A DNA stretch of 64,000 nucleotides from Paramoeba atlantica (taxonomy: Eukaryota > Protista > Discosea). Made by a program: the position numbers and the translations under genes. This document shows positions 2,762 through 34,700 of this stretch, piece after piece. The notes under the pieces were generated by a model. It did not search any database, was not told where the DNA came from, and saw only the letters and a list, made by a program, of their open reading frames with translations. The stretch covers positions 62,001-126,000 of the forward strand of contig CDRNVI010000069.1 in the NCBI GenBank assembly GCA_977017575.1, read 5' to 3'. The stretch's first letter is position 1. The number at the start of each line of letters is the position of its first letter.

Positions 2762-4255
2762 TTAAAAAAAGTCAAAATCACCAATAAGTACGGTGGCAAC
2801 AAAAAACCACACATACCAGTGGTTCCGGTAAGAGTTCGCTATGCGCTCATGAAATAAATATCTCTGATGCTCGCTGCAATAGTTGTAGAGATAAAAATCA
2901 ACAGGAATGCAAAGTTCTCGCTTATCTTTGTCAATACGATACGAAGAACCGGGCGCTGTCAAACGAACGGTATGGCCTTTCAAGTAGGCCCGAAAAAGCC
3001 ATGCGGTGCGCAGAAACGCATCGCAACAAGATTGAAGCTGACTGGGGGTAATGTAATAATTCTTTTCCGTTTGTTTTTGTCCAGTTACTGAAACACCCGC
3101 AGCCGCAGGTAGAGCACTTGGCTCTACCCGTAGAGACGCGTCATGTTCATTAAAATGAAACCCGGAAAGGGTGCATCGAAAGCGCACCGCTTCCACTGCC
3201 TCATGGAGACGTTCCTGTTCCTCCTGAACCGTGACCTGCAGATGCATCAGAGGGGAAGCCTCTGTGCGTAAAAAGTGCAACACCTCATAGGGCGTCGCGG
3301 TGTCTAGAAAACGAACCTCCGCTCGGGCCCAATCAATCGTATAGGGCAATGTTCTAGCAATTGCCCCCAGATTTCGGGTTGAGCGTTTTGTTTTTTGAGT
3401 TTCAGAACTCAAAGGTTTGCTCTTTTCCTCCTCTGTGGGAGTCCTTGATAAAATAGGGCTCTTGTTTGTTGTTTCCTGCGTGGGCTCTTGCAACGCCCAG
3501 GCCGTGTATTGCCCTCTTGTAAAATTACGGTAGTCCGAGGTCTCTTCCTGGTGATCGTTCACGAGGGTTCGTTTCGCCACGTTTGGCAGCTCTTGCAGCA
3601 CCCCCTGCCGTACGGGATCAGGGACCACCGAAAGGGACAAGTGGGAGAATGCGGGGACTTTTTCAAACAGCGCACGAGAGGCAAGAAGTCGCGCAGAGAA
3701 CCCCGCAAAGTCAGCCGATTTATCCCATGTTACACGTTTCCATTTCATTTGGTTGCGCAGGGGCTGGGAGCCGTAATATTGGGTTAGGCCATCGTCGGCG
3801 TCCTCAGGAGAAGGTGGTACAGTTTCCGTCGTTTTCGCAGTGCTTCTTTGTAAATTCGCGCTTTGAGAATCCGTAGGGGTGCTAATTTCTGTGACTGAGG
3901 CACATCCTGGTGCATTCGTTGCATTCTGCCCGTTTGTGATTGGTTTCGTTTTGTCACCGCTTTCTGTTGTGCCCACAGAAAGGGGCGATGTAGGGGGAGA
4001 TGTATTTTTAAACGAAGTGCATGCCCACTGCCATGCGGTCTTTGTGTAGTGAACAAATCCCTTTTCATCTTTTTGACGTTCATGAAGGACATGATTCATG
4101 ATTTCCCTTTGGGTTTTCATCCAAATTAGAACATCACTGGGACGAGTCGTATTTTGAAGAGGTAACGCCACACACCCCATGACAGTAGCGCGACGCATCA
4201 TCAGTGTAATATTCAACAAAAATAATTTTTGAAGAAGAGAATTTTTCTTTTGCAA
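2762..4255 (-). CDS. Hypothetical protein (497 aa; start may be MMRRATVMG)
   Basis: Long intronless ORF co-oriented with the gene cluster; no family recognised. Confidence 0.7.
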   Translation of the reverse strand: MQKKNSLLQKLFLLNITLMMRRATVMGCVALPLQNTTRPSDVLIWMKTQREIMNHVLHERQKDEKGFVHYTKTAWQWACTSFKNTSPPTSPLSVGTTESGDKTKPITNGQNATNAPGCASVTEISTPTDSQSANLQRSTAKTTETVPPSPEDADDGLTQYYGSQPLRNQMKWKRVTWDKSADFAGFSARLLASRALFEKVPAFSHLSLSVVPDPVRQGVLQELPNVAKRTLVNDHQEETSDYRNFTRGQYTAWALQEPTQETTNKSPILSRTPTEEEKSKPLSSETQKTKRSTRNLGAIARTLPYTIDWARAEVRFLDTATPYEVLHFLRTEASPLMHLQVTVQEEQERLHEAVEAVRFRCTLSGFHFNEHDASLRVEPSALPAAAGVSVTGQKQTEKNYYITPSQLQSCCDAFLRTAWLFRAYLKGHTVRLTAPGSSYRIDKDKRELCIPVDFYLYNYCSEHQRYLFHERIANSYRNHWYVWFFVATVLIGDFDFF

Positions 4256-4889: not shown

Positions 4890-5270
4890 TTGCTGAAGAA
4901 GTGGGAAATGAACTTTACTGTCTTAAACTCTTCTTGTTCCGTTCAAGAGAAGCATGATGCCTTGCAAACTTTGGGTCCGAAACTCATAGAAGAAGCTCAG
5001 CTTGCACTGAATTGTCCGGAAAGGAATGCTTTTTTTTGGCGGCGTCACGCGATTCTTGGCGGCGTCACGCGATGGGATACGAACAAATGTGACTCCATAA
5101 AGTACGTTATACGAAAGTTGCCAACGTTGACTAGATTAGTGGAGCACCACTGCACGAAAGAAAAGACACCCTGTAAGTCAATTCAGGATATTAAGAACGG
5201 AGATGCCTTAAGCAAACTGCAGCAGGAAAAAAAAGAGCAGGGTTCGCGGAAACTTTTAAACCTTAAATAA
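4890..5270 (+). mobile_element. hAT-like transposase remnant (family B)
   Basis: DALQTLGPKLIE..LGGVTRWDTNKCDSIKYVIRKLPTL aligns with DALSLYGPQVIE..LGGVTRWCHDKFSSISFFSTQLPTV of the 874-aa ORF; internal ~20-bp tandem duplication at about 5036-5075. Confidence 0.75.
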
Positions 5271-7139: not shown

Positions 7140-7925
7140 ACCAGAGGAAAGTTCTGCAAGAAAATTTTGTTGAAATGAAGAGCACAGAAGGAAACAAGCA
7201 AGTAGCAGAGTGTAAGTTGTGTCCTGAAGGTGGACGTAAACATTTTTTGATCGCCAAAGGTCTGCAGACCGACTCTATGGCTCCAGAAAAACACCTGCTA
7301 AAACATGATAAGACTTACGACGTCTGGTCTAGGGAACAACAGGAAAAGCGCCGCCGTGAAAACCCAACAATTAATATATCACCACAGGCTGCTTCACCAG
7401 AACATCATGAAGATTATAAACATCATGATGATTACTATCTGGAAATCAGTGTAGGATCCCAAGCTCAGCTCTTTAGCATCCGCTAAATCGAAATAAAATC
7501 ATGCGAGGTTTATGCCCCACTCCACCTCGAAGAGAAAAGATGAATGAACTGATTATAGAGTACGCGGGGCAAGCGCGAACAAATACATGAAATGAATTCG
7601 AGTTCAAATTTTCAGATGTGTGCGCATGAATGGATACTTCAACGATCCATCATTGTACAATATGTGCCGTGACCCTAGTGTGCAAAGGTACATCAATGTG
7701 TTGGACTAACTATATTAAGCCAATGTCCTCCATTGATGACCCCTCCTTCAAAGTTTGCTTGAACAAGTTTTGGTGGAACTTTGTCCCGAGCGAATTTTTG
7801 CTACACACCTAGAGTCAGATGCCGGAGCAGGAATCAAGGGCTTGATCATGACTGCAACGGAAAACGGAATCGCCTACACCGTTTGCTTCGTTCATTCATT
7901 ACAAAGCGAAGAAAAGGGGATCGGT
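7140..7925 (+). mobile_element. hAT transposase pseudogene (family A)
   Basis: BED-like finger ECKLCPEG..EKHLLKH, then ESDAGAGIKG and VCFVHSLQ (second Asp, CxxH); stops and frameshifts; homologous to 23354-23641 and 26330-30602. Confidence 0.8.
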
Positions 7926-15474: not shown

Positions 15475-16443
15475 TTACGGTTTCTGTGGACCTCTGAAAT
15501 CAAATCTAGGTAATTTATACCGTGTAGAAGGATTTTTTCGCCTCTCTCCGTCTTTGATCATTACTATATTCGTTCCTGAAGTGTCAATTCTTGTAATCGG
15601 TGAAGTTTTCCTTAGTGATTCCGGTAGTTCGAGATACGTAACTTCTCCAATAAGATTTAAGTTGTTGCTCACCCATAAATATTCTAAGCACTGCGGAAGC
15701 ATGTCAAAAGACACCAAACCTGAAAAGCAGTTATGGTCCAAAAACAGGCGTTCTAGTAACTGAGGCAAGTGCGTTAAATTTAAGGGACCATTTAACTCAT
15801 TGTCAGATAACTTAAGATAAACCATGTTCAATGGCAAATCCGTGAGACTTATGCCTCCAGAAAAAGTATTTTCAGCAATGGATAAGCGTTCCAATTCTTT
15901 GGGCAAACAGCTGAGGTTTATGTCTCCTACAAATTGATTATCATCAAGAATCACCTTTCGCGAATTCACGGGGAGATCCTGCAACTCAACTTTTCCCCTT
16001 AGACAGTTAGAATCCGTATCTAGCTGTATCAGAAGGGGTGGTAACGTGAGAAGTGGTAGCCCACCTGTAAGTCTATTGAGTCTCACGTTTAGGAACTTTA
16101 AAGAACGAGGGAGCATTTCCCAATTAAGAGCCCCTGAAAAACTTTGTGAAGGCATGTGTATGCCAGTGACACGTTTTTCCAGATCGCAGTGTACCCCTTT
16201 CCACTGACACACGGGCGTGAGTGTATTCCAATCGGGCGGTACAACATCGAGTTCTTTGATGAGCTGCATCAGCTCATATTCCGGTGGTAGATTAGCTCCC
16301 CGAACCTTGCTCGGTAGTCTGCGCATCGCAGTGGCGTTGGTGTCGTCGGCAGCGCGGAACACAAAGGCTTCTATGATGTGCATCATAAGTTCACACGGAT
16401 TATTTAAATATTTTGACAGGAGACGAAAAAGAAAAAAATACAC
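15475..16443 (-). CDS. Small plant-specific-type LRR protein
   Basis: LPSKVRGANLPPEYEL..W..TPVCQWKGVHC plus about 7 LRRs. Confidence 0.92.
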   Translation of the reverse strand: MYFFLFRLLSKYLNNPCELMMHIIEAFVFRAADDTNATAMRRLPSKVRGANLPPEYELMQLIKELDVVPPDWNTLTPVCQWKGVHCDLEKRVTGIHMPSQSFSGALNWEMLPRSLKFLNVRLNRLTGGLPLLTLPPLLIQLDTDSNCLRGKVELQDLPVNSRKVILDDNQFVGDINLSCLPKELERLSIAENTFSGGISLTDLPLNMVYLKLSDNELNGPLNLTHLPQLLERLFLDHNCFSGLVSFDMLPQCLEYLWVSNNLNLIGEVTYLELPESLRKTSPITRIDTSGTNIVMIKDGERRKNPSTRYKLPRFDFRGPQKP

Positions 16444-18560: not shown

Positions 18561-18739
18561 ATGCTTCCAGTTTAGGAACTGTATTATTAAAAGCTGTATT
18601 ATTAGGAACTGTAGTATTAAAAGCAACGGTGCTTCTTTTTTTCAATCACGCATCAATCGCGGCCTCAAAGGAAGAAAGCGCCAGAGAAGCTTTAACAAAG
18701 AGAGAAAGGCAATTTTAAGAAAAGTGCACCTTAAATACA

Positions 18740-21700
18740 TAGCTGTCATTCGACGTCGAAAATTGCAATTCGACGTCTTCGAATGTCTTTCGACGTCGAA
18801 AAAATGGGTCTTTCGACGTCGAACGAAGGAAAAAAAATGGGGGATTCTTGTGTTTATGTGCAGCACTTGAAAAAATGTTTCGATCGACGGATTCTTTTCA
18901 CTACAGTAATTTGCTATGGTATTCGGACGAATAGATGACTACCAGAGAATAAGAAAGTAGCAACGTATGGTTGTCGTCAGGTTGTTCGTCAGACCGCTAG
19001 GAAGTTCTAACCGTGTTAAATGCGTCACCTTTTATTTGAAACATGTTCAAATACGTAATTAATGAAGTTTAATAAAAAGATACGGAAAATTATGACTGTA
19101 CTAGTCATTATCATAGTATAAGCTTATGACGTTTACTGTTGCCGTATAGCTAAGCACAAAATATCTCGCGTTGCAATAATACAAGAAAAATTTAAGTGTG
19201 AGGAAAAAATTTAGCCTTAATGGTCCTGAAGTATGAGACAAAACATGGAAAAAACCCCAGAAAATATCAGTTTCCGAACAATACATGAAACATCCATACA
19301 TAAATAATTATACAGTAATACAATATAACAATATTATAATGGGTTATGAATTTATGACGTATCAGAAAAAAAGCAGACTCGCATCAGGAGCCATTAAGTA
19401 ATTCGGAAGCTTGAAAGAAGTTACACCGAATCCCCATTTCCCGCTGATCCTAACTGTTCCAAATTGTCAAGATACCCGAGTTTGTCGTAGTTCCCCCGTA
19501 ACAGCATAGAGTTTTGTACTGTTTGAGTGCCCATGGATGATTGACGGGAGTTGTACTTGGTGTTCATAACCGACATCCAAGAATCACATTTCGTCACTAA
19601 AGGGGGTACCCATAAATAATGTATCGCCGCTTGATGTATACCTGGGTATTTGTAGACTCCAACTGTTTGCCACCAATGCAATTCGCACTTGTGCACTCGC
19701 GAATCCCATTCGTAGTCGACGCAATTCACATATTCATTCCATTCATTTTCCGTAATTTGAAAAATGGGAGAACCGCCTCGAAAAAGGTCGTTAGCACGAC
19801 TGAAATGAATTGGTTCGAGACCGGCTTTCCGGGCGCGTAGTGCAATGAAATCCGGTGCAAACCACATGACGTCTTCCCAATATTTCATATTGTGATGAAC
19901 TGAAAGTCGATTTATGTGATGCTTGAGGGCACATTCAAAAGCTTCACTGCAGCTTCCCACCCGACTAGCCTTCCGTAATCTTTCTAAAGTTGGCCAAACT
20001 CCCGTTGCTAAAGGCGTACCGTCTAAATCCGAAAATTTTTGTAACGCTTTCTGGATAGGAGCTAGTTCTTCGAGAAAATATTTTGCGGAAGTCGCCAGGT
20101 TATCTACCCCTTCCCGAGCAATAAGATCCGCACACTTACGTACAGACTGACAAACTCGGGGGTTTTCCAGTTCTTGCTTCAGGAACGCGACAACAGTAGG
20201 TAACTGAGTAGAAAAGAAGGAAATGCTGCTGAACTTATCATGGCACCAGCGAGTAACTCCCCCTAACTTAGGAGCCGTAATGCCGTGTACATCCTTTGCT
20301 CTACGAACAGCTTCAATTACTTGAGGTCCATACAATGAAAGTGCGTCACGACAGCGAGGAATATTTTCATGCTGAGCGTTCAGTTCCGCCAAAATTATAT
20401 CAGCTTCATCGGGCGCATATTGTTTCAAAATTTGTACGCTGCTGCGAAGCTGACACACCAGCTCTGTCTGATATTCATCGTCCAGTTTATTGCTAGACAG
20501 CCCCCCATACCATTGAGTGAAAAATTGTTCCGCTTTGTTAGTTTCTTCGTCGAAAGATCCAAGAAGAACGTCTAGGGCCACACCACGATACCGCCCCTTC
20601 TTCGTACAGATCTTGTCATGTCCATAAAATGTTTGTCTGAAGAGCTTTTTAAGTTCAAAAAGGGGTGTTTCCTGAAAGGGTTTCATCGCATCCATCGCGA
20701 GGTTATTGAGAAAATGACCAAAGCAAGATAGTAAGGAGACGTGTGGCATCATGTCCACGGCCCGGTTTCCGAAGTTTATCCAGTCCGACTCCCCAATTCT
20801 TTGAACGCGATCATATATTCTTTTTAATTCTCCTTCTGCCTCATCACGGGCCACGTGGTTAACGGCACAGCCATCCACCATTAAAAACCTCATTTTTCGT
20901 ACCAGCGTAATGCCGAGAATAGAATTCAATGTATTAACCAAACTCTCAGCTGTTTCTTTGCCGTTGAATGCCTTCCGCTTCGGATGATACATGGGTGGTA
21001 ATAGATATTGCTCATCTGAAACATACACCACCCCTACTAATACGTGCTCGTTGAGCACGGAATCAACCCCAGCATCCACAGCTACCCCGAAGAAAGGATG
21101 AATATCGATTTTTGAAATCATTTTTTCCCATATTTCGTTGGCCAAGTCCTTCTCCCAATCACGCATGACCCTGTGATTGTTGCCGAGTGCATTGAGAATT
21201 TCTTCAGTATTTGCTCGCTTGGGGCGTAATTCTTCATAGTTACGAAGTAAAGCGTGTGCAGCTTTGCATGACAAGTTCGTCTTTGCCACAAGACAGGGAA
21301 CGCAGCGACGAACAAAAACATTTACACTCATTGAATTGTCGTTCGGGGTCAGTGAAAAAAGTTCCGGTTCGTTTGCGATTCTCTGTCCCTCGCGCACTAA
21401 ACAAGTGTGATTGATATGGTGATAGTAATGGTTGTTATGGAGCGAATGACTCCACCACGGACAGTCGCGACACTTTATGTGAGTCCGCTGGCCCAAGGTA
21501 TTCACGAGATGGGGCCGAGGATATTTCTCGGCGTATTCGCGACACTCTTTGTTTTTCTTCTCCAAATCTTTCGTTCTACCAGGCGGGGTATCCATTCCCA
21601 AGCAGCGTTCACGAAAGAATTTTGTCGAAATACGGGGAAACCGCATTGGGTCCTGTACAAGCTGTTTTCGAACTACTTGCCTTACAGAGCTTGCCTGTTG

Positions 21701-22225
21701 TGATGGAGAGGACGACATTTCCTCTTCAAGCCTCGCGGTACACTCTCGTCGTACTGAGACAGGAACATAACTCCCTGACGGAACGTTATCGGAAATTTCA
21801 AATCTGCTCTGGGTAGGACCATCTGCTGCTTCCGTGGAAGCATCTCGCTGCATGGCAGTTCTATTCTTCTTCGCCGAATTGGTTCTCTTGGCACGAACCG
21901 AAGTAACTGAAGGAGTAGTAGATGAAACAAATTCGGAAGAATTTGCTTCAGCTAAAGTTGGCACGATTGCATCTGATGAAAGAGCTGGGGGAGAAGGTAT
22001 GCGGATAGGAATCATGCGCCCTCTTCCTCGAACAGAGGTGTGCATTGTGAAAAAAGAAGTAAATTAACACAAAAAAGTAGAAGACTGGTTGCAAATACAT
22101 TTTTTAAACATTTTATAAACATATATTCTGTTGAAAAAAATTCTTTCAGAAACCACACAAGCACTCAAAATGTTTCGACCTTTCGACCGTCGAACGACGT
22201 CGAATTCGACGTCGAATGACAGCTA
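18740..22225 (-). mobile_element. Full-length hAT-like DNA transposon (family B)
   Basis: Perfect 21-bp TIR TAGCTGTCATTCGACGTCGAA at both ends; repeated subterminal TCGACGTCGA palindromes; one long transposase ORF. No exact 8-bp TSD. Confidence 0.9.
19421..22045 (-). CDS. hAT-like transposase (874 aa, intact)
   Basis: BED-like CRDC..H..H; FGVAVDAG; FLMVDGCAVN; CFGH; GGVTRW; C-terminal dimerisation block WWQ..YPGIHQAAIHYLWVPPLVTKCDSWMS. Confidence 0.88.
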   Translation of the reverse strand: MHTSVRGRGRMIPIRIPSPPALSSDAIVPTLAEANSSEFVSSTTPSVTSVRAKRTNSAKKNRTAMQRDASTEAADGPTQSRFEISDNVPSGSYVPVSVRRECTARLEEEMSSSPSQQASSVRQVVRKQLVQDPMRFPRISTKFFRERCLGMDTPPGRTKDLEKKNKECREYAEKYPRPHLVNTLGQRTHIKCRDCPWWSHSLHNNHYYHHINHTCLVREGQRIANEPELFSLTPNDNSMSVNVFVRRCVPCLVAKTNLSCKAAHALLRNYEELRPKRANTEEILNALGNNHRVMRDWEKDLANEIWEKMISKIDIHPFFGVAVDAGVDSVLNEHVLVGVVYVSDEQYLLPPMYHPKRKAFNGKETAESLVNTLNSILGITLVRKMRFLMVDGCAVNHVARDEAEGELKRIYDRVQRIGESDWINFGNRAVDMMPHVSLLSCFGHFLNNLAMDAMKPFQETPLFELKKLFRQTFYGHDKICTKKGRYRGVALDVLLGSFDEETNKAEQFFTQWYGGLSSNKLDDEYQTELVCQLRSSVQILKQYAPDEADIILAELNAQHENIPRCRDALSLYGPQVIEAVRRAKDVHGITAPKLGGVTRWCHDKFSSISFFSTQLPTVVAFLKQELENPRVCQSVRKCADLIAREGVDNLATSAKYFLEELAPIQKALQKFSDLDGTPLATGVWPTLERLRKASRVGSCSEAFECALKHHINRLSVHHNMKYWEDVMWFAPDFIALRARKAGLEPIHFSRANDLFRGGSPIFQITENEWNEYVNCVDYEWDSRVHKCELHWWQTVGVYKYPGIHQAAIHYLWVPPLVTKCDSWMSVMNTKYNSRQSSMGTQTVQNSMLLRGNYDKLGYLDNLEQLGSAGNGDSV

Positions 22226-22535
22226 TTTAAAATAGCTCCAAAAAATTAATGGTAAGCGTGCAGTGACGAAGGTATTCGTCTTTTTCGTTATGGAAACATG
22301 CGGAATACAGCTCGCCATTTCGAAATTTGTTGACGAATTAATATTTCACAAATCTATATTTTTGGGTATCCTTATATCACATTTTTTTACGACCACTATA
22401 CCCCATACCCATCAGTGGAGTAGAAACATTTACCGCTCTTAGGCACTCAAAACTACATGATAGAAAGAATTGCGCCGCGAAGCGGCGCGCTCTTTTTTGG
22501 GGGGAAGAAAATTTTCACCCTCGACCTGAAACATA

Positions 22536-23353: not shown

Positions 23354-23641
23354 ATGCCCGAAACGAAACTGACGAGGAGAAATTTCTGTAAAGACTATTT
23401 TAATGAAGTACCGCGCACGGGAGGACAGAAACCAGTGGTGGAATGCAACCTGTGTGAGGAGGGAAGTAAGAAGCGGATTTTGGTTCCAAGAGGACTATCG
23501 ACAGATTATCGTTCCGCAGAGAAGCACTTAGTGAAACACGACAAAAAATATGGGGTACGAGGACACTTCCGTGAGTACTCATCGAAACGCCCACGTGTCA
23601 AAACGAAAATCATCGAAACGAAAGAAACTCATCGAAGGTGA
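23354..23641 (+). mobile_element. hAT family A, N-terminal BED-finger fragment
   Basis: VECNLCEEG..EKHLVKHDKKY, homologous to 7175-7486. Confidence 0.75.
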
Positions 23642-24135: not shown

Positions 24136-24494
24136 GGCTGACTTCTTATTTTCATGATCTCGACTTTCTTTTCCCAAAGTAATTAAAGTCACCTTCGATG
24201 AGAAGATTGACGTTTCGATGAGTCACACTGTGACACGTAGGCACTTCAATGAGAAATCATCGAAGTGTTGCAAAAACTCACGGAAGTGCCCGGGGGGCCA
24301 AAATATGATACCTGGTGTGCTGAACAAAACGAAAAGCGTCGACGTGCAAAACCGACGTTAAACATCTCGTCACAAGCGTCCAAACCTCAGGACCATAAGG
24401 ATATTGCGGTGGTTGTATAACTACCGCTCTACCCTCGATTATTGAAAAAAAGTGAGCAAAAACAGTGAAAATATAAGAGGAACACAGTAATATA

Positions 24495-25575: not shown

Positions 25576-27118
25576 ATTTCCTTAGTGGCAGGCTCGGGCA
25601 TCGTGCTAAAAAATGCGTTTAAAGACTTCTTAAATAGTACTGCTTTAAGAAATATAAATATTGATTGAAGTATGATTGAGGAAATTTGTAAAACAACTGA
25701 TTTAAATCCATGAACAAAAGCATAAATTTTGCAAAATAGTGGCAGACAGTGGCAGATGGTGGCGGACAAAACCATACACTTCTGCAGTACATCCATGGAT
25801 GCTTTTTTTAAAATCGATTCTTTTTTGAAATTTTTAAAATCGCTTCATCTATTGTATTTTTATAGTTTGGGACCTACACTACCTTTCTACGCCATTGTTT
25901 TCGACAGATATCCCTTCTTCAAGCCGTGGTATGCCCGCGTAAATGACCCATTTTTGACTCAAAAAGGTGAAAAAATATTTTTCGGACCCCAAGGGGCCTT
26001 TTTGTGTCGAAAGAATGGTGTGGTTGGAGTCGCATTCTCTGCCGAATACGTTTGTCAGGCTTTCATTCATGACTACGAGTGATTTCCCACACGCAAATAT
26101 CGGATTTAGTGCTCTGAGAGCAAAAATACCGAAAAATGACCCCATTTTTACCGAAAATCGGCTAGTTTTGATAATGATCTTTCCGTTTTCTTCAGCTTTC
26201 CACGCCAAATTTTCTTTTTTAGGTTCTTCGTTAAACGCGGTGGTAGTTTTCAACGCGAAGTGCGCAGCACTAGTGACTTATAAGTTGAAAACAACCACCG
26301 CGTTTAACGAAGAGCCTAAATATTAGTTTGGAAAGCAGAGTTCGGAATTTCAACCGCAGCTCTCGAACATCCGTTGTTTTTTAACAGAAGTGTACGAGGT
26401 ATGTGTCCCACTCCACCTCGAAGGGAAAAATTAAACGAACTGACCATTGAGTATGCAAAGCAAACTAGAGTAAAGATGTGCGTTGACCTTGGTTTAAAAT
26501 TTTCGGATGTGAGTTTATGTTTAGACACAGCCACTTTTCACCATAGTACGACCTGCGCCGTTACAATGATCAACAATGGTGTTTCTATGTATTGGACCGT
26601 CAAACCCATGCCCGCAAGTGATGCATCTGCCTTTCAACTTCTATTAAAACATACCCCTCCTGGGCAAATGGGTAATTACCCACGTGGTGGTAAACGCGGA
26701 TAATTTACCCGGGTCATTGACCCATTTACCCGCATTCACCCAGATTTACCAACCAACCATACGATCCCGTACTAGAATAAAGCTCGATGACTGTGCCAAC
26801 TTTGCTGAGCAAGTTGTCGCTACAGAAACAGTATCTCAATCCATAGAAGGAAAAATCCGTCTTTCATTCGGTTTCCCCCCTTTCCTATCCCCTAAACCAA
26901 ACAATCTTTCTTTATTTTTTTTATTTTTTTTCTTGACCTGGCGGGCTTATCCCCGCTTCATACAGTACTAATACTATACTGTATAGTAATCACTGTACTA
27001 AAGTCAAATACAACTACTGCGTAAAATCCACATAATGTTAAGTCAGTTATGTTCTGTATCTGACAATGATTCAAGCTCACTATCATTTTCCAGCGAATCA
27101 GCATCACCTTGAGTCATA

Positions 27119-28677
27119 CAGGGGGGTAAATCAGATGCTGCGGGGGGTCTAAAAATTGCAAAACCTTTCCAATTTTGGAAAATGATAGCGTATTCGAGAG
27201 CTCTCGAAGAGTTCTATGTTTTAGAAAAGGCAGCTTCCCGGGGTATAGGGGGGTGTTCAACTGACAAGAAGCCCAAAAACGTCAAAACACAAAAATTGTG
27301 AGAAAGGTTTTAGACGACTAATAATTACAACTTTCTCCTTTTTTTTCTACTACTATGTCGAAACGCCGCTGCATGCTGTTTAAAGTGTTAATGAGCATGT
27401 CATGACCATCTGTTTTAATGTAATCAACCGCTCTTTCAATAGAAAACAAGAGTTCAGTCCTATTTTCTGGATTTGTACCATTTTTAATAAAGGCATCCAT
27501 AATTTCCTAAATGTTTTCAATGGGGTTAAGATCTGGGGATTTTGGGGGAAAGTCCAAAACAACGACTTCGTTTTCTTTAAAGGTTCTAAAACTGCCATTG
27601 TGGCAAGGAGCATTATCCATAGCAACCCGGGACCCGCTATGACGCTTTAAGAAACTTAAAAAAACCCCTCTTTTTGTCATCGCGCATTTAAAAACATCTG
27701 AAGTGATGGTAATTTTCCCATTACTGTCCCTGTTTGGAAAAACATGATAAAAAATTCCATAAATAAAGCTTATACCCATCCAAACGTTCACTCCATCCCC
27801 CCCAAACCACTTTTGCGAAGCTTTTAGAGGTGGTTTCGGGGGGTCACTTGCTCTGCAAATGTAAGAACGGCTTTCGCGCCCAAGTTGACAAGTAAACTTT
27901 TTTTCGTCACACCAAATAATGTGACGAAGCTGTGCGACAGACCACTTCTGCATTTTCAATGCAAAGGTTAGTCGCTTGGCCTTATGAGATTCAGTTAAAA
28001 AAAGGCCTTTCGAAAAAGAACGTTGGATTATCCCGGCGTCCTTCAAAAAATTTACTACAGTTGGCCTGCTGCAGGTGAAACCTCGTTTCCTGACCTCTCG
28101 AAGTATAAAATTCCAGGAGGGACAACCGCGTGTGCTTGACGTGTTGGCCGTGTCAATAATCTCGTGGCACGCATCAAGAAGCCCGGGTGTCGCCACAGTG
28201 CGTTCGCGAGGGGGTGTGGAACGTTCAACGTCCCCGGTTTCCTCAAAGCGTTTCACCCACAACTTGACAGTGCTGTGGTGGACGCCTTCTCTTCGGCAAG
28301 TGGCACTATAGGAATTTGTATTCTCGTAATCTTTTACAAGAAGCATCCTATGTGAATATTTGGTGTGCCCAGGGGAGGAGTACGCCCTATCGGAGAGAGA
28401 TCCTTTGTTCTGCATAGAACGGGATCGCTTTCGCGGCATAAAACTGAGACGAAATGGAGAAAAAACGAAAAAATGAGCAAATTTGGGAAAAACTGCAAAT
28501 TTTAGAGGGGCAAAAAAACTTAAAAAAAATGCCATAAACAAAATTGCTTTCTTTTGGGGTGAAAATAGCGCAAAAACATAGAACTCTGCGAGAGCTCTCG
28601 AATGCGCTATCATTTTCCAAAATTTGAAGGGTTTTGCAATTTTTAGACCCCCCCGCAGCATCTGATTTACCCCCCTG
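27119..28677 (-). mobile_element. Full-length Tc1-like element, DD32E
   Basis: About 100-bp TIRs starting CAGGGGGGTAAATCAGATGCTGCGGGGGGTCTAAAAATTGCAAAACC; TA on both flanks. Confidence 0.95.
27318..28439 (-). pseudogene. Tc1-like transposase with one nonsense codon
   Basis: MPRKRSR.. HTH region, WCDEKKF, MDNAPCH, PPKSPDLNPIENI; TAG at 27507-27509 where Trp is expected; the frame continues to ..KGESCNY*. Confidence 0.9.
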
Positions 28678-31109
28678 TATATCCTAGCTTGTCACAATTT
28701 CCTCGCACGAATATCTGGTGCGATACAACATCGGGAGCAAGGGAGGCCTGGCGTGAGCTATACATATATCCAAGCACGTATATCCAAGCACGGAAAGACA
28801 GGAGTCGCACCTGTTGACCAGGGGTGGCGTCCAAACGTAGTGTACGGCAGCTTCGTAAATCGCTGGGAACATTTCACATCCAGGACAACACCACCATTCG
28901 TACTCGTTGCTGAACTTAGACGGATCCCAACTGAAATCGAGGCATGCTAAGTATTTTTCCCACTCATCGGATGAAATACGAAAGATCGGCAGCTCGGCCG
29001 ACGGACCGTCCGCATTTTTGTCAAAAACATTATTTGCTCGAGCTACCGAGATGGGGAGAAGACCACAAGGACGAGCGAACTGAACGATCCATCCGGGACG
29101 GAACCAGAGAACATCGTTCCAAAAGCGGATATTATGATTTTTTTGTAGACGAGTCTTGTGATAAAGAAGTGCTTCTCGCATTCGCGAGGGCGCTTCGTCA
29201 CTTTCGCTATGTTCGAACAAGAGCTGCAGCGCAGTTCCGACCTGAGTGAGACGTTTTTAAATCGGCAATGAGATTGAAATGTGCAACCCTCTGTCGTGCA
29301 CACAAAGTGTACTTTTTGGTTAAGGGGGTCTATAAGAACATCCGCGTGTTCGTGCGGACAGTTTGGCGGGCAGCGAGCCAAATTAAAGTGCCCAGACAAA
29401 GACTTCACCGTCATCTTGTGCCGCTCGTTTCGCTTTGATCGCTTTGGGTCCGGGGTCACTATCTCATCCTCAGAGCTTGATTCAGATGAAGCGATCGGTT
29501 CGGGCGTACTGACTGTCGATGATCTTCGCTTGGGCATGTAATAAATAGACGATAAAAGTGCAACGCTATCAGCAAAGTAAATGATATTATGATTGAAGGA
29601 AAAAGAATCTGAGATTTTTCCGATAGGTATACAAAAATAAAACATTTAAAATCATTTAAGGTACAACTTTTCAGTTCCTGTCATCGAGCGGGTAAACGTG
29701 GGTAAAGCGGGTAAATGGGTAATTTACCCGGGTAATTACCCATTTACCCGGCAGGGGTATGTTAAAAGAGGTTGTAGAGGAGCTTTACGCCGATCGAATT
29801 TTTGTGGCGCACGAGGCTTCAGACGCAGGAGCTGGAATCAAAAAGGGTTTAATAATAACCGCTGAAGAGAGTGGAATAGCTTACACTGTTTGCATGGTCC
29901 ACTCGCTTCAACTTTGCATGGGGCACACAATGCGGATGGAAAATACTGATGAGATTTTAGGCCTCGGAAAAAATTACGAAAAGTGACGGGTACCTTGTCC
30001 GACACGTTGGTGGTCGACCTTTGACTCGGTCGAACATGCTCTGGGTGATTCTGATTGGGAAGCGTTTACGACAAAAGCTCGAATGTTTTCGTGGCTTGAG
30101 TCGCTTCTCATTTATCCATTGTTGGCAGATTCATGGAAAGAAACGAATGTACGCTCCCCACGGCAATGCGAATTTGGATGCAGCTGATAAATGACGTATC
30201 TCAGCCACATGGGATGGTCTTAGCAGATCGCCTTGTGCGAATTTTGCGACACGAACATCTTTTTGCTGCATCACTGTCACCATGCATTGACTGGAACGGA
30301 CGGTCTTGCATCGTAGGACTCGGCCAGTGTGCTCGCAATTGGCGATAAAGTTGTCAAAACCCCCCAATAAAGAAGCGTCCGAGCCGGGAGTGCGTCAAGA
30401 TTTGAATCTGTGGTTTAGTGGACGTGTGCAGGAGTTTTTTAACATGAACGAAGGTTTCTCTATTGAAAAAGAAAGTAAAATGTTTAAGTTTTGGTCGGAC
30501 TTATCATTTAAAGGCAAATTTTTACATTTGCCTAGGGCGGCACAGAAGCTGACTTCCTTTGTTGCTTCTGAGGCAATTTGTGAGAGATTGTTAGTTCCGT
30601 AGAATTTATAAACCCCGCGTCATGAAAAGTGACGCCCACTTTTTTTCGTACATTTGTCCGTTTGAGCTGATTTTTGTGGCATTTTGCACATCTCACCATA
30701 GGAACTTTGCGCGCTTATTAGCGGGCCTCAACAGAGAACACCGACTATTTATAATTTTTTCACATTTCCGCCTTTCAATCTTATACACTTCTTAAAGGCG
30801 TGAGTCAAAACTTAAAACCGTATTGTCGATCACATTTTGAGATAAACAAGACCACGCTTTGCGTACATATCGGATGAGTGAAGGCTTATCCGAAGGAGTC
30901 TGTTCGTCCACTGCCCCTTATACCATAGACCGGACGACCCTTAGTCCATAGACCAGACGCAAGTATAATTTAAAATATACAATGTATTGTATGAAATAGA
31001 TTTTCGCAATTTCCAATTGGATTCGTATAGTACAGGATGACGTACATCAATGAAGCACATTATATCTCTATGCACATACACCTAGAAACATGCACATTCG
31101 CATGTACCT

Positions 31110-33599: not shown

Positions 33600-34700
33600 T
33601 CTTTGGCGCAGAGATAATCCTCTTAATGCGACGGCCGATATCATCGGCACATAATCCGCCCACAACGGATGTCGCCAAAGGGGGTTCGACACGGACTCGG
33701 TCGGTAGAGGGGGTCCAGGCAACTCGCCCTCTCTTTACGCAGCCGGAGGGGCGTACTGCAACCGACTCGGTCCCAGTCGGTAGAGGTGGTCCAGGCAACT
33801 CACCACCTCTTTACGCAGCCGGAGGGGCGCACTGCAACCGACCGCTGCCTCGCGATAATGCGAGGCAGAGTCACGCCCAGTGGTCCTCAAGGGAGGCCAC
33901 CATGGCGCATAGCTCCCGGGAAGAGACAGGCGCGAGAAGAAGAAAGCCGGGGAGGGAAGAAAACTCACTCAAGGAGTGAGCCGGGGAGGGGTGAAAAGTC
34001 GGAAGTACGTCCCCTACTTCCACGACAAAGAGGGACAGTCCCTGCTAGCCGTCAGCCGGAGACGGGCTTTTAAAAGGAAAATGTATGCCCGTTTCCGGGA
34101 AAAGAAAGGAAGGGCTAGCAAAATGTACCAACAAGGTACAGAAACTGTATCTAGATCTAGTTGACACGATCACTGGACGCATTGCCAAACCCAATTCTCC
34201 AGCTGAACAGCATGAGGGACGAGGCACCCGGCCCCGCCTAGCTAAACGAAAATATACCACATCTCTCAACAACACTCTCCCCTCCGACTCCACCGAACAG
34301 GAAACCATTATACCACGACAGAGGCATCTCAGCCAAGCAATATCGGAAAATGAATTCCAGGCTGCGTACATGAAAACAGACGCAAGGACGAGGGCACGAT
34401 GGGTTTCTCAATCAGGGCCGGAAACTGGGCTTTTGTAACACCGTCCAAGAGCAGAGGCTACGCTTTTACCCACACGGAGTTTCGGACTCTGACACGCTGG
34501 TGGCTCGGGATGAATATCTTGCCGGAGGATCAACCTTGCCCAGCTGACGGCTGCACCCTTCCCTTACTTAAAAATGGAGAGCACGCTTTGCTCTGTAAGA
34601 ATGGACACGGTATAATCTCACGACATAATGCCGTAGCGCAACAATTTACGTCCTTTTGCAGCAAAGCTTTCCTTCAACCACAGAGAGAGCTGCTATGACG
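33600..34700 (+). mobile_element. Internally deleted CRE-like retroelement (structured 5' region plus zinc-knuckle fragment)
   Basis: ARWVSQSG..FRTLTRWWLG..CPADGC..GEHALLCKNGHGIISRHNAV; the 5' region shares AGTGGTCCTCAAGGGAGGCCACC with 62250-62560. Confidence 0.75.

Follow-up and report, generated by a model that had tools for sequence, protein, structure and literature searches.

A probable autonomous hAT transposon with a predicted Asp-Asp-Asp catalytic triad in a Paramoeba atlantica assembly

Introduction

The closest described counterpart of the transposon reported here is Hermes, a hAT element of Musca domestica (PDB 2BW3, 4D1Q, 6DWW and 8EDG), whose transposase runs from a BED-type finger and DNA-binding helices into an RNase H-like core that an all-helical insertion interrupts, followed by a C-terminal hAT region, and whose catalytic triad is Asp-Asp-Glu (DDE; D180, D248 and E572). 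To our knowledge, hAT transposases have been treated as strictly DDE. One survey counts a hAT as active only when D180, D248, R318, W319 and E572 are all present (PMC6027215). In a 64,000-nucleotide stretch of contig CDRNVI010000069.1 from Paramoeba atlantica (the window; coordinates are positions within it), an initial annotation had recognized a hAT-like transposon with Asp at the catalytic Glu position and proposed a distinct, possibly active hAT-related lineage. Our analysis supports this proposal through an invariant Asp and recent mobility of the family, though the terminal base of the window copy is mutated. We consider it very probable that the element is an autonomous hAT cut-and-paste transposon from a deep lineage that uses Asp-Asp-Asp (DDD; D324, D391 and D821) instead of Asp-Asp-Glu.

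Target-site duplications (TSDs) of hAT elements are not always 8 bp long. The hAT5, hAT6 and hAT7 groups of Repbase have TSDs of 5, 6 and 7 bp (Kapitonov and Jurka 2007, as cited in PMC12730594), so a short TSD alone is not new, and hAT5 and hAT6 have been placed within an animal hAT lineage that includes Blackjack (PMC12730594). These three groups share with our element a hAT-type transposase and a TSD below 8 bp. The hAT5 and hAT6 groups fall within that animal lineage, whereas the DDD lineage comes from kinetoplastid-related protists and metagenome contigs.

Profile, domain and fold evidence for hAT membership

Membership of the hAT superfamily is supported in three ways, by a profile match to Hermes, by a Pfam dimerization domain and by a fold match. 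The window protein alone reached E 0.027 with the Pfam hAT dimerization domain (Dimer_Tnp_hAT, PF05699), below the cut-off; the same domain was recognized in 7 of the 10 paralogues from this genome and, across the lineage, in 16 of 24 members (best E 3.8e-8), and genomic matches lay above the cut-off. When the PDB was searched by sequence with a profile of own-genome proteins only, no match was obtained. One appeared only once distant relatives were added: the 24-member profile, which includes 20 distant full-length relatives (15-24% identical), recovered the Hermes transposase 8edg_A at E 2.8e-13. In the HMMER alignment, D324 falls on Hermes D180 and T598-R599-W600 on T317-R318-W319. The block lPpvVtsCDSvlS aligns without gaps to Hermes IPASSAASERTFS and sets D821 on E572, the substitution that had been read from the sequence at the outset.

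The structure prediction and Hermes comparison that the initial annotation had called for gave a concordant picture. An AlphaFold2 model built on a 42-sequence alignment had a mean predicted local distance difference test score (pLDDT) of 78 and a predicted template modelling score of 0.65, with much of the core above a pLDDT of 90. The ten best Foldseek matches in the PDB were all Hermes (E 2.6e-8), the P element transposase coming next at ~1e-2. VIA-align superposed model residues 290-860 on Hermes 143-609 (Z 22.8, root-mean-square deviation 3.3 A, 395 residues); its runners-up were the ISCth4 transposase (10.5) and retroviral integrase cores (~10; model 311-318 to 853-865). The Foldseek ranking led us to reject a P element identity, and the presence of the hAT C-terminal domain led us to reject P element, Kolobok, MULE and Transib alike.

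Within the model, D324 lies in strand 319-328, D391 ends strand 385-391, and D821 sits on helix 818-830 after the insertion domain. In RNase H-like transposases these strand and helix positions are the standard places of the three catalytic carboxylates. As modelled, the three Asp residues occupy the DDE positions of the fold: the two Asp of the Hermes triad have counterparts, and the third position is Asp.

Could the lineage instead stand outside hAT proper, as a group at superfamily level that has nothing but the fold in common with hAT and differs in triad, TSD, termini and insertion size? Identity to Hermes is just 10-13%, the triad is DDD, the TSD is 6 bp as in the hAT6 group rather than the usual 8 bp of hAT, and no Pfam hAT catalytic-domain model (DUF659, DUF4371, DUF4413 or ZBED1-like) matched at E up to 1. 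Yet only the Glu and the 8-bp TSD are missing from the hAT signatures, the others being present (a putative BED-like finger, CxxH, TRW and CA terminus). The C-terminal dimerization domain exceeds the Pfam cut-off in several members, the profile reaches Hermes, and families with TSDs of 5, 6 and 7 bp already count as hAT (PMC12730594). We therefore regard placement outside hAT as unlikely and retain the element in that superfamily.

Domain layout of the transposase

In the model, residues 1-129 are disordered. A putative BED-like CxxC...H finger (C192, C195) comes next, then a region of DNA-binding helices, and last an RNase H-like core into which an all-helical insertion domain is set; this predicted order of domains matches that of Hermes. 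In the finger, C192xxC195 and several subsequent His residues are conserved; the region aligns to the Hermes N-terminal CRKC in a weak stretch (E 0.063), gave no match to Pfam zf-BED, and is modelled as a hairpin plus helix at a pLDDT of 80-90.

Motif spacing follows Hermes closely at first and then departs from it. The first two Asp residues are 67 amino acids apart, against 68 in Hermes, and the second Asp lies 50 amino acids from the CxxH cysteine, against 17 (+33). From that cysteine to the TRW tryptophan (C441-W600) the distance is 159 amino acids, with a range of 126-178 across the lineage, compared with 54 in Hermes (C265-W319); the roughly threefold expansion first reported thus stands. 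The accompanying claim of an enlarged insertion domain holds for this CxxH-TRW interval (+105 amino acids, modelled as confident helices with a pLDDT mostly of 81-96) and needs refinement for the domain as a whole, as the segment from Trp to the third carboxylate is 32 amino acids shorter (221 here, 253 in Hermes), leaving a net enlargement of ~73.

An invariant Asp across a deep lineage

We searched 1.84 billion representative sequences exhaustively with a profile (E up to 1e-3), which yielded 206 matches; neither among the best 150 of these nor among the relatives aligned was Glu found at the third position. In a 42-row alignment, that position is Asp in all 32 covering rows and Glu in none. 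The other motif residues are nearly as constant: D324 is kept in 32 of 32 rows, D391 in 31 of 32, C441 in 35 of 35, H444 in 34 of 34, R599 in 38 of 38 and W600 in 36 of 38. Other acidic columns mix the two residues, column 419 holding 20 D and 9 E and column 768 holding 4 D and 28 E. Because the third Asp is invariant while these columns exchange D and E, the alignment points to selection that keeps Asp itself.

The same alignment bears on whether this is an ordinary DDE hAT in which a Glu elsewhere serves as third carboxylate and D821 is merely its structural neighbour. One candidate is E768, in an E-W motif, whose column is acidic in 89% of members; it is Glu in only 78%, however, aligns to the non-catalytic Hermes E523 and precedes the last RNase H helix. 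No column of conserved Glu occurs anywhere in the lineage, so we found no alternative active-site Glu of the kind that would have overturned the initial annotation. D821, by contrast, is unvarying, sits on E572 within the gap-free block and belongs to the closing helix of the RNase H fold. A hidden Glu is in our judgement very improbable, and D821 is the predicted third carboxylate.

Comparison within the genome sharpens the distinction. Family A, a canonical DDE hAT of the same genome (for example L072:1252-3024:-), shares the D...D...CxxH...TRW order and the C-terminal Pfam domain with the DDD lineage, but keeps ASEAxCERLFS with its Glu and has a CxxH-W distance of ~38 amino acids; hhalign linked the two only through the C-terminal block, at a probability of 40%. 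Both states occur side by side in the window, as the initial annotation had observed: a fragment of a second DDD-type family (28679-29172, minus strand; 43% amino acid identity to residues 706-858) reads VWTPPLVNRCDSCLS near 28792-28827 (-), and a family A fragment at 30330-30590 (+) retains VASEAICERL.

The lineage extends well beyond this genome. In a quick maximum-likelihood tree rooted on family A, the five own-genome families formed one clade (Shimodaira-Hasegawa-like approximate likelihood ratio test support 97), nearest to two environmental groups (joint support 100). Short contigs from Logan, JGI or ENA carry the distant relatives (15-24% identical), save for P0107, which is a transcript of Papus ankaliazontas, a prokinetoplastid (EukProt); it carries the CDS motif and groups with a metagenome protein from JGI (support 100). 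Other deep branches, several in number, exceed one change per site. Word-index protein searches recovered only proteins of the same genome with the paralogue alignment and nothing with canonical family A. A metagenome scan gave a single locus, L073:1638-4342 (JGI contig Ga0169931_10047381), a relative in the Papus clade with 20% amino acid identity; its element is bounded on either side by CATACCTT and has CCGGTACCGT as subterminal repeats.

The Asp is thus fixed across very deep divergence, and an activity rule of the E572 type (PMC6027215) would class the whole DDD lineage as dead. Our literature search found no hAT with Asp at the third position, a prior Repbase description being possible. 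Outside hAT, piggyBac and mariner are DDD-type cut-and-paste transposases, with TTAA and TA as their respective TSDs. They resemble our element in showing that Asp can take the third catalytic place of a transposase with an RNase H-like core, but belong to unrelated superfamilies with other folds around the core and those different TSDs.

Termini, target duplications and recent mobility

The 45.7-Mb assembly contains five full copies of the element, whose transposases share 99-100% identity. Several further copies are truncated or carry internal deletions, and paralogues with 36-58% identity number in the dozens. Inverted repeats in the window span 18736-18760 and 22205-22229 and are perfect over the 21 bp first described (18740-18760 and 22205-22225). 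This 21-mer end occurs 27 times in the assembly and is immediately preceded by CA at 23 of the 27 ends. This makes the 23-mer CATAGCTGTCATTCGACGTCGAA the true terminus and sets the limits of the element at 18738-22227. Terminal inverted repeats (TIRs) of hAT elements begin with CA or TA, with the consensus YARNG. Those of the window element begin CATAGCTG; at 23 bp they fall within the 10-25 bp hAT range, and the CATAG start fits four of five YARNG positions.

The census of TSDs over all copies, as originally suggested, revealed an exact 6-bp direct repeat immediately outside CA...TG at every full copy except that of the window. Across five families of the genome we counted 13 exact 6-bp TSDs, each different, and no 8-bp duplication at any copy. 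The element's own family contributed ACACAT, AAACTT, AAGAAT, GATCGA and TGTATC (the last at a deletion copy on contig C40), a 95% subfamily GCCTTT and GGGGGT, and the paralogous families AAAATA, GTGATC, TAGAAT, TATTTA, TAATAT and GACAGA, with one further case matching at 5 of 6 positions. All 13 TSD-bearing elements terminate in CATA(C/G), and the CATAG/CATAC termini differ from those of Hermes; the ends of the four paralogous families are CATACCCC, CATACCCT, CATACCTT and CATAGTCT.

Full-length alignment of the five copies (L001-L005) showed L002 and L003 to be identical over 3,489 bp, L004 to differ at 1 site and L005 at 10-11. As L002 and L003 lie at different sites with TSDs of their own, the family is recently mobile. 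The window copy carries 12-14 differences, 8 of them private. Against the master copy, 7 of 12 differences fall in the 683-bp non-coding tail (element nucleotides 2808-3490; about 1.0%) and 4 of 12 in the 2,625-bp open reading frame (ORF; 0.15%), where 2 are synonymous and the protein has two changes, S39F and M184L.

At the window copy's own outer edge, T stands at 22227 in place of the G that every sister copy carries (AA instead of CA on the element strand), and column 1 of the five-copy alignment reads a in this copy and c in the other four. Its flanks, TAAATA and TAAAATA, form a decayed 6-bp TSD. These differences, the mutated base and the imperfect TSD indicate an older insertion with one damaged end, which explains why the initial annotation, right that no 8-bp TSD is present, found no clean duplication. 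From its sequence, the window copy is probably a poor excision substrate, and with its transposase ORF intact it may supply transposase.

Copies might also arise by duplication, with the transposase gene domesticated or catalytically dead. Two loci of the 95% subfamily, C39:500629-504085 and C40:345301-348757, do have identical flanks and the same TSD, and represent a segmental duplication or two haplotigs rather than two insertions. Beyond such cases, at least seven family copies occupy distinct sites with their own exact 6-bp TSDs directly outside intact TIRs, identical copies are located on different contigs, and internally deleted and truncated derivatives accompany them, as is typical of an active transposon. 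We regard domestication or duplication as very improbable, and transposition best accounts for the copies.

Some observations weigh against an autonomous element with a DDD active site. The placement of the three Asp residues rests on alignment and secondary-structure topology: D391 (mvDGcaVN) and C441xxH444 were paired with Hermes D248 (vtDrGaNv) and C265xxH268 by motif only, HMMER misaligned the D391-CxxH stretch against the extra helices, and the model is of low confidence at residues 393-399, just after D391. In one member of the lineage, P0120, the second Asp is replaced by G and the Trp by C, lesions which imply that some members are inactive. The L073 element is without a TSD (flanks CGGCAC and AATGTA), which may reflect a chimeric assembly across copies. 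Finally, the route of expression proposed below is one that we infer.

Element anatomy and proposed mechanism

The ORF had been described as uninterrupted, and so it proved. Its position and those of the ends, repeats and motif codons are collected in Table 1. The motif TTCGACGTCGAA occurs in 4 exact copies in the window against 0.12 expected by chance, all within the element's subterminal 90 bp. Subterminal repeats of this kind are the usual transposase binding sites of hAT elements, and the TTCGACGTCGAA copies are likely binding sites here.

Table 1. Coordinates of the transposon and its predicted functional features in the window
Feature	Position	Strand	Remarks
Complete element, 3,490 bp	18738..22227	(-)	Strand of the transposase; from the TIR census and the alignment of five full copies
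TIR, element 3' end in transposase orientation, CATAGCTGTCATTCGACGTCGAA	18738..18760		
TIR, element 5' end in transposase orientation	22205..22227		Outermost base 22227 mutated
Left TSD, TAAATA	18732..18737		6-bp length inferred from 13 exact TSDs at other copies
Right TSD, decayed, TAAAATA	22228..22234		One A extra
Subterminal palindrome TTCGACGTCGAA, three exact copies and degenerate ones	18749..18826		Likely transposase binding sites
Subterminal TTCGACGTCGAA copy and degenerate relatives, opposite end	22168..22216		
Transposase ORF, uninterrupted, 874 amino acids and stop	19421..22045	(-)	
D324 codon GAT, predicted first catalytic Asp	21074..21076	(-)	Equivalent to Hermes D180; strand 319-328 of the model
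D391 codon GAT, predicted second catalytic Asp	20873..20875	(-)	End of strand 385-391; Hermes D248 by motif vDGxxvN
C441-F-G-H444, hAT CxxH motif	20714..20725	(-)	
T598-R599-W600	20246..20254	(-)	Equivalent to Hermes T317-R318-W319; the Hermes Trp is used in hairpin formation
D821 codon GAT, predicted third catalytic carboxylate	19583..19585	(-)	Equivalent to Hermes E572; helix 818-830

In the mechanism that we propose, the transposase would use its putative BED-like finger and its DNA-binding helices to recognize the subterminal TTCGACGTCGAA repeats. Cleavage would take place at the CA termini in the manner of hAT elements, with a nick that is followed by a hairpin on the flanking DNA and W600 stabilizing the flipped base. 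The two-metal site would be built from three Asp residues, and the 3'-OH ends would be joined to target phosphates 6 bp apart rather than 8. Expression of the intronless ORF probably depends on read-through of the surrounding minus-strand gene array, as part of long one-strand transcription units.

A broader and doubtful possibility is that the DDD/6-bp lineage is an ancient sister of all described hAT elements, confined to kinetoplastid-related and little-sampled protists, in which the change from Glu to Asp, jointly with the added helical subdomain that separates CxxH from TRW, reset the spacing of the two active sites to give a stagger of 6 bp, not 8. If this reading is true, the element, being naturally active and intronless with a single ORF, would also offer kinetoplastid relatives a candidate for a native DNA-transposon tool. 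The combination of Asp, 6-bp stagger and re-sized insertion domain in the lineage is in any case a natural system in which to study the determinants of target stagger in hAT transpososomes.

Host context

Several features of the window suggest that the host looks kinetoplastid-like. All 13 window ORFs of at least 250 amino acids share the minus strand, an arrangement like that of a polycistronic unit in kinetoplastids. A 19-mer similar to the 3' end of the spliced-leader exon of kinetoplastids, CAGTTTCTGTACCTTGTTG, lies at 34129-34147 (-). The genome has about 910 occurrences of it (458 forward, 452 reverse), irregularly spaced and scattered over contigs, and the control has none; it may mark a retroelement family with a spliced-leader fragment or dispersed spliced-leader genes. 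Most of the 13 ORFs have no Pfam match; one carries a leucine-rich repeat N-terminal domain (15475-16443).

A 2021 paper described Merlin as the first DNA transposon in kinetoplastids, where only retrotransposons had previously been reported (PMC8101967). With the element described here, a recently mobile DNA transposon is now on record for protists related to kinetoplastids. An IMG/VR viral scan with the profile alignment returned no relative, so nothing points to a giant-virus vector.

Other transposon sequences in the window

The element has several transposon-derived neighbours. The second DDD-type fragment adjoins a Tc1-like ORF of 384 amino acids (27507-28661, minus strand) with Pfam matches to HTH_Tnp_Tc3_2, HTH_23 and, in part, DDE_3; this is apparently a Tc1/mariner-type transposase with a truncated catalytic domain. 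Plus-strand fragments of canonical family A lie at 23354-23551, 24301-24411, 26320-26643, 29759-30590 and 7157-7904, the last being a more diverged relative (52-67% amino acid identity). Other insertions split the family A fragments, consistent with a nested transposon cluster. A weak tblastn match at 4956-5186 (+) to residues 567-636, the TRW region (31% over 81 amino acids, E 5e-5), is probably an old relic of the DDD lineage.

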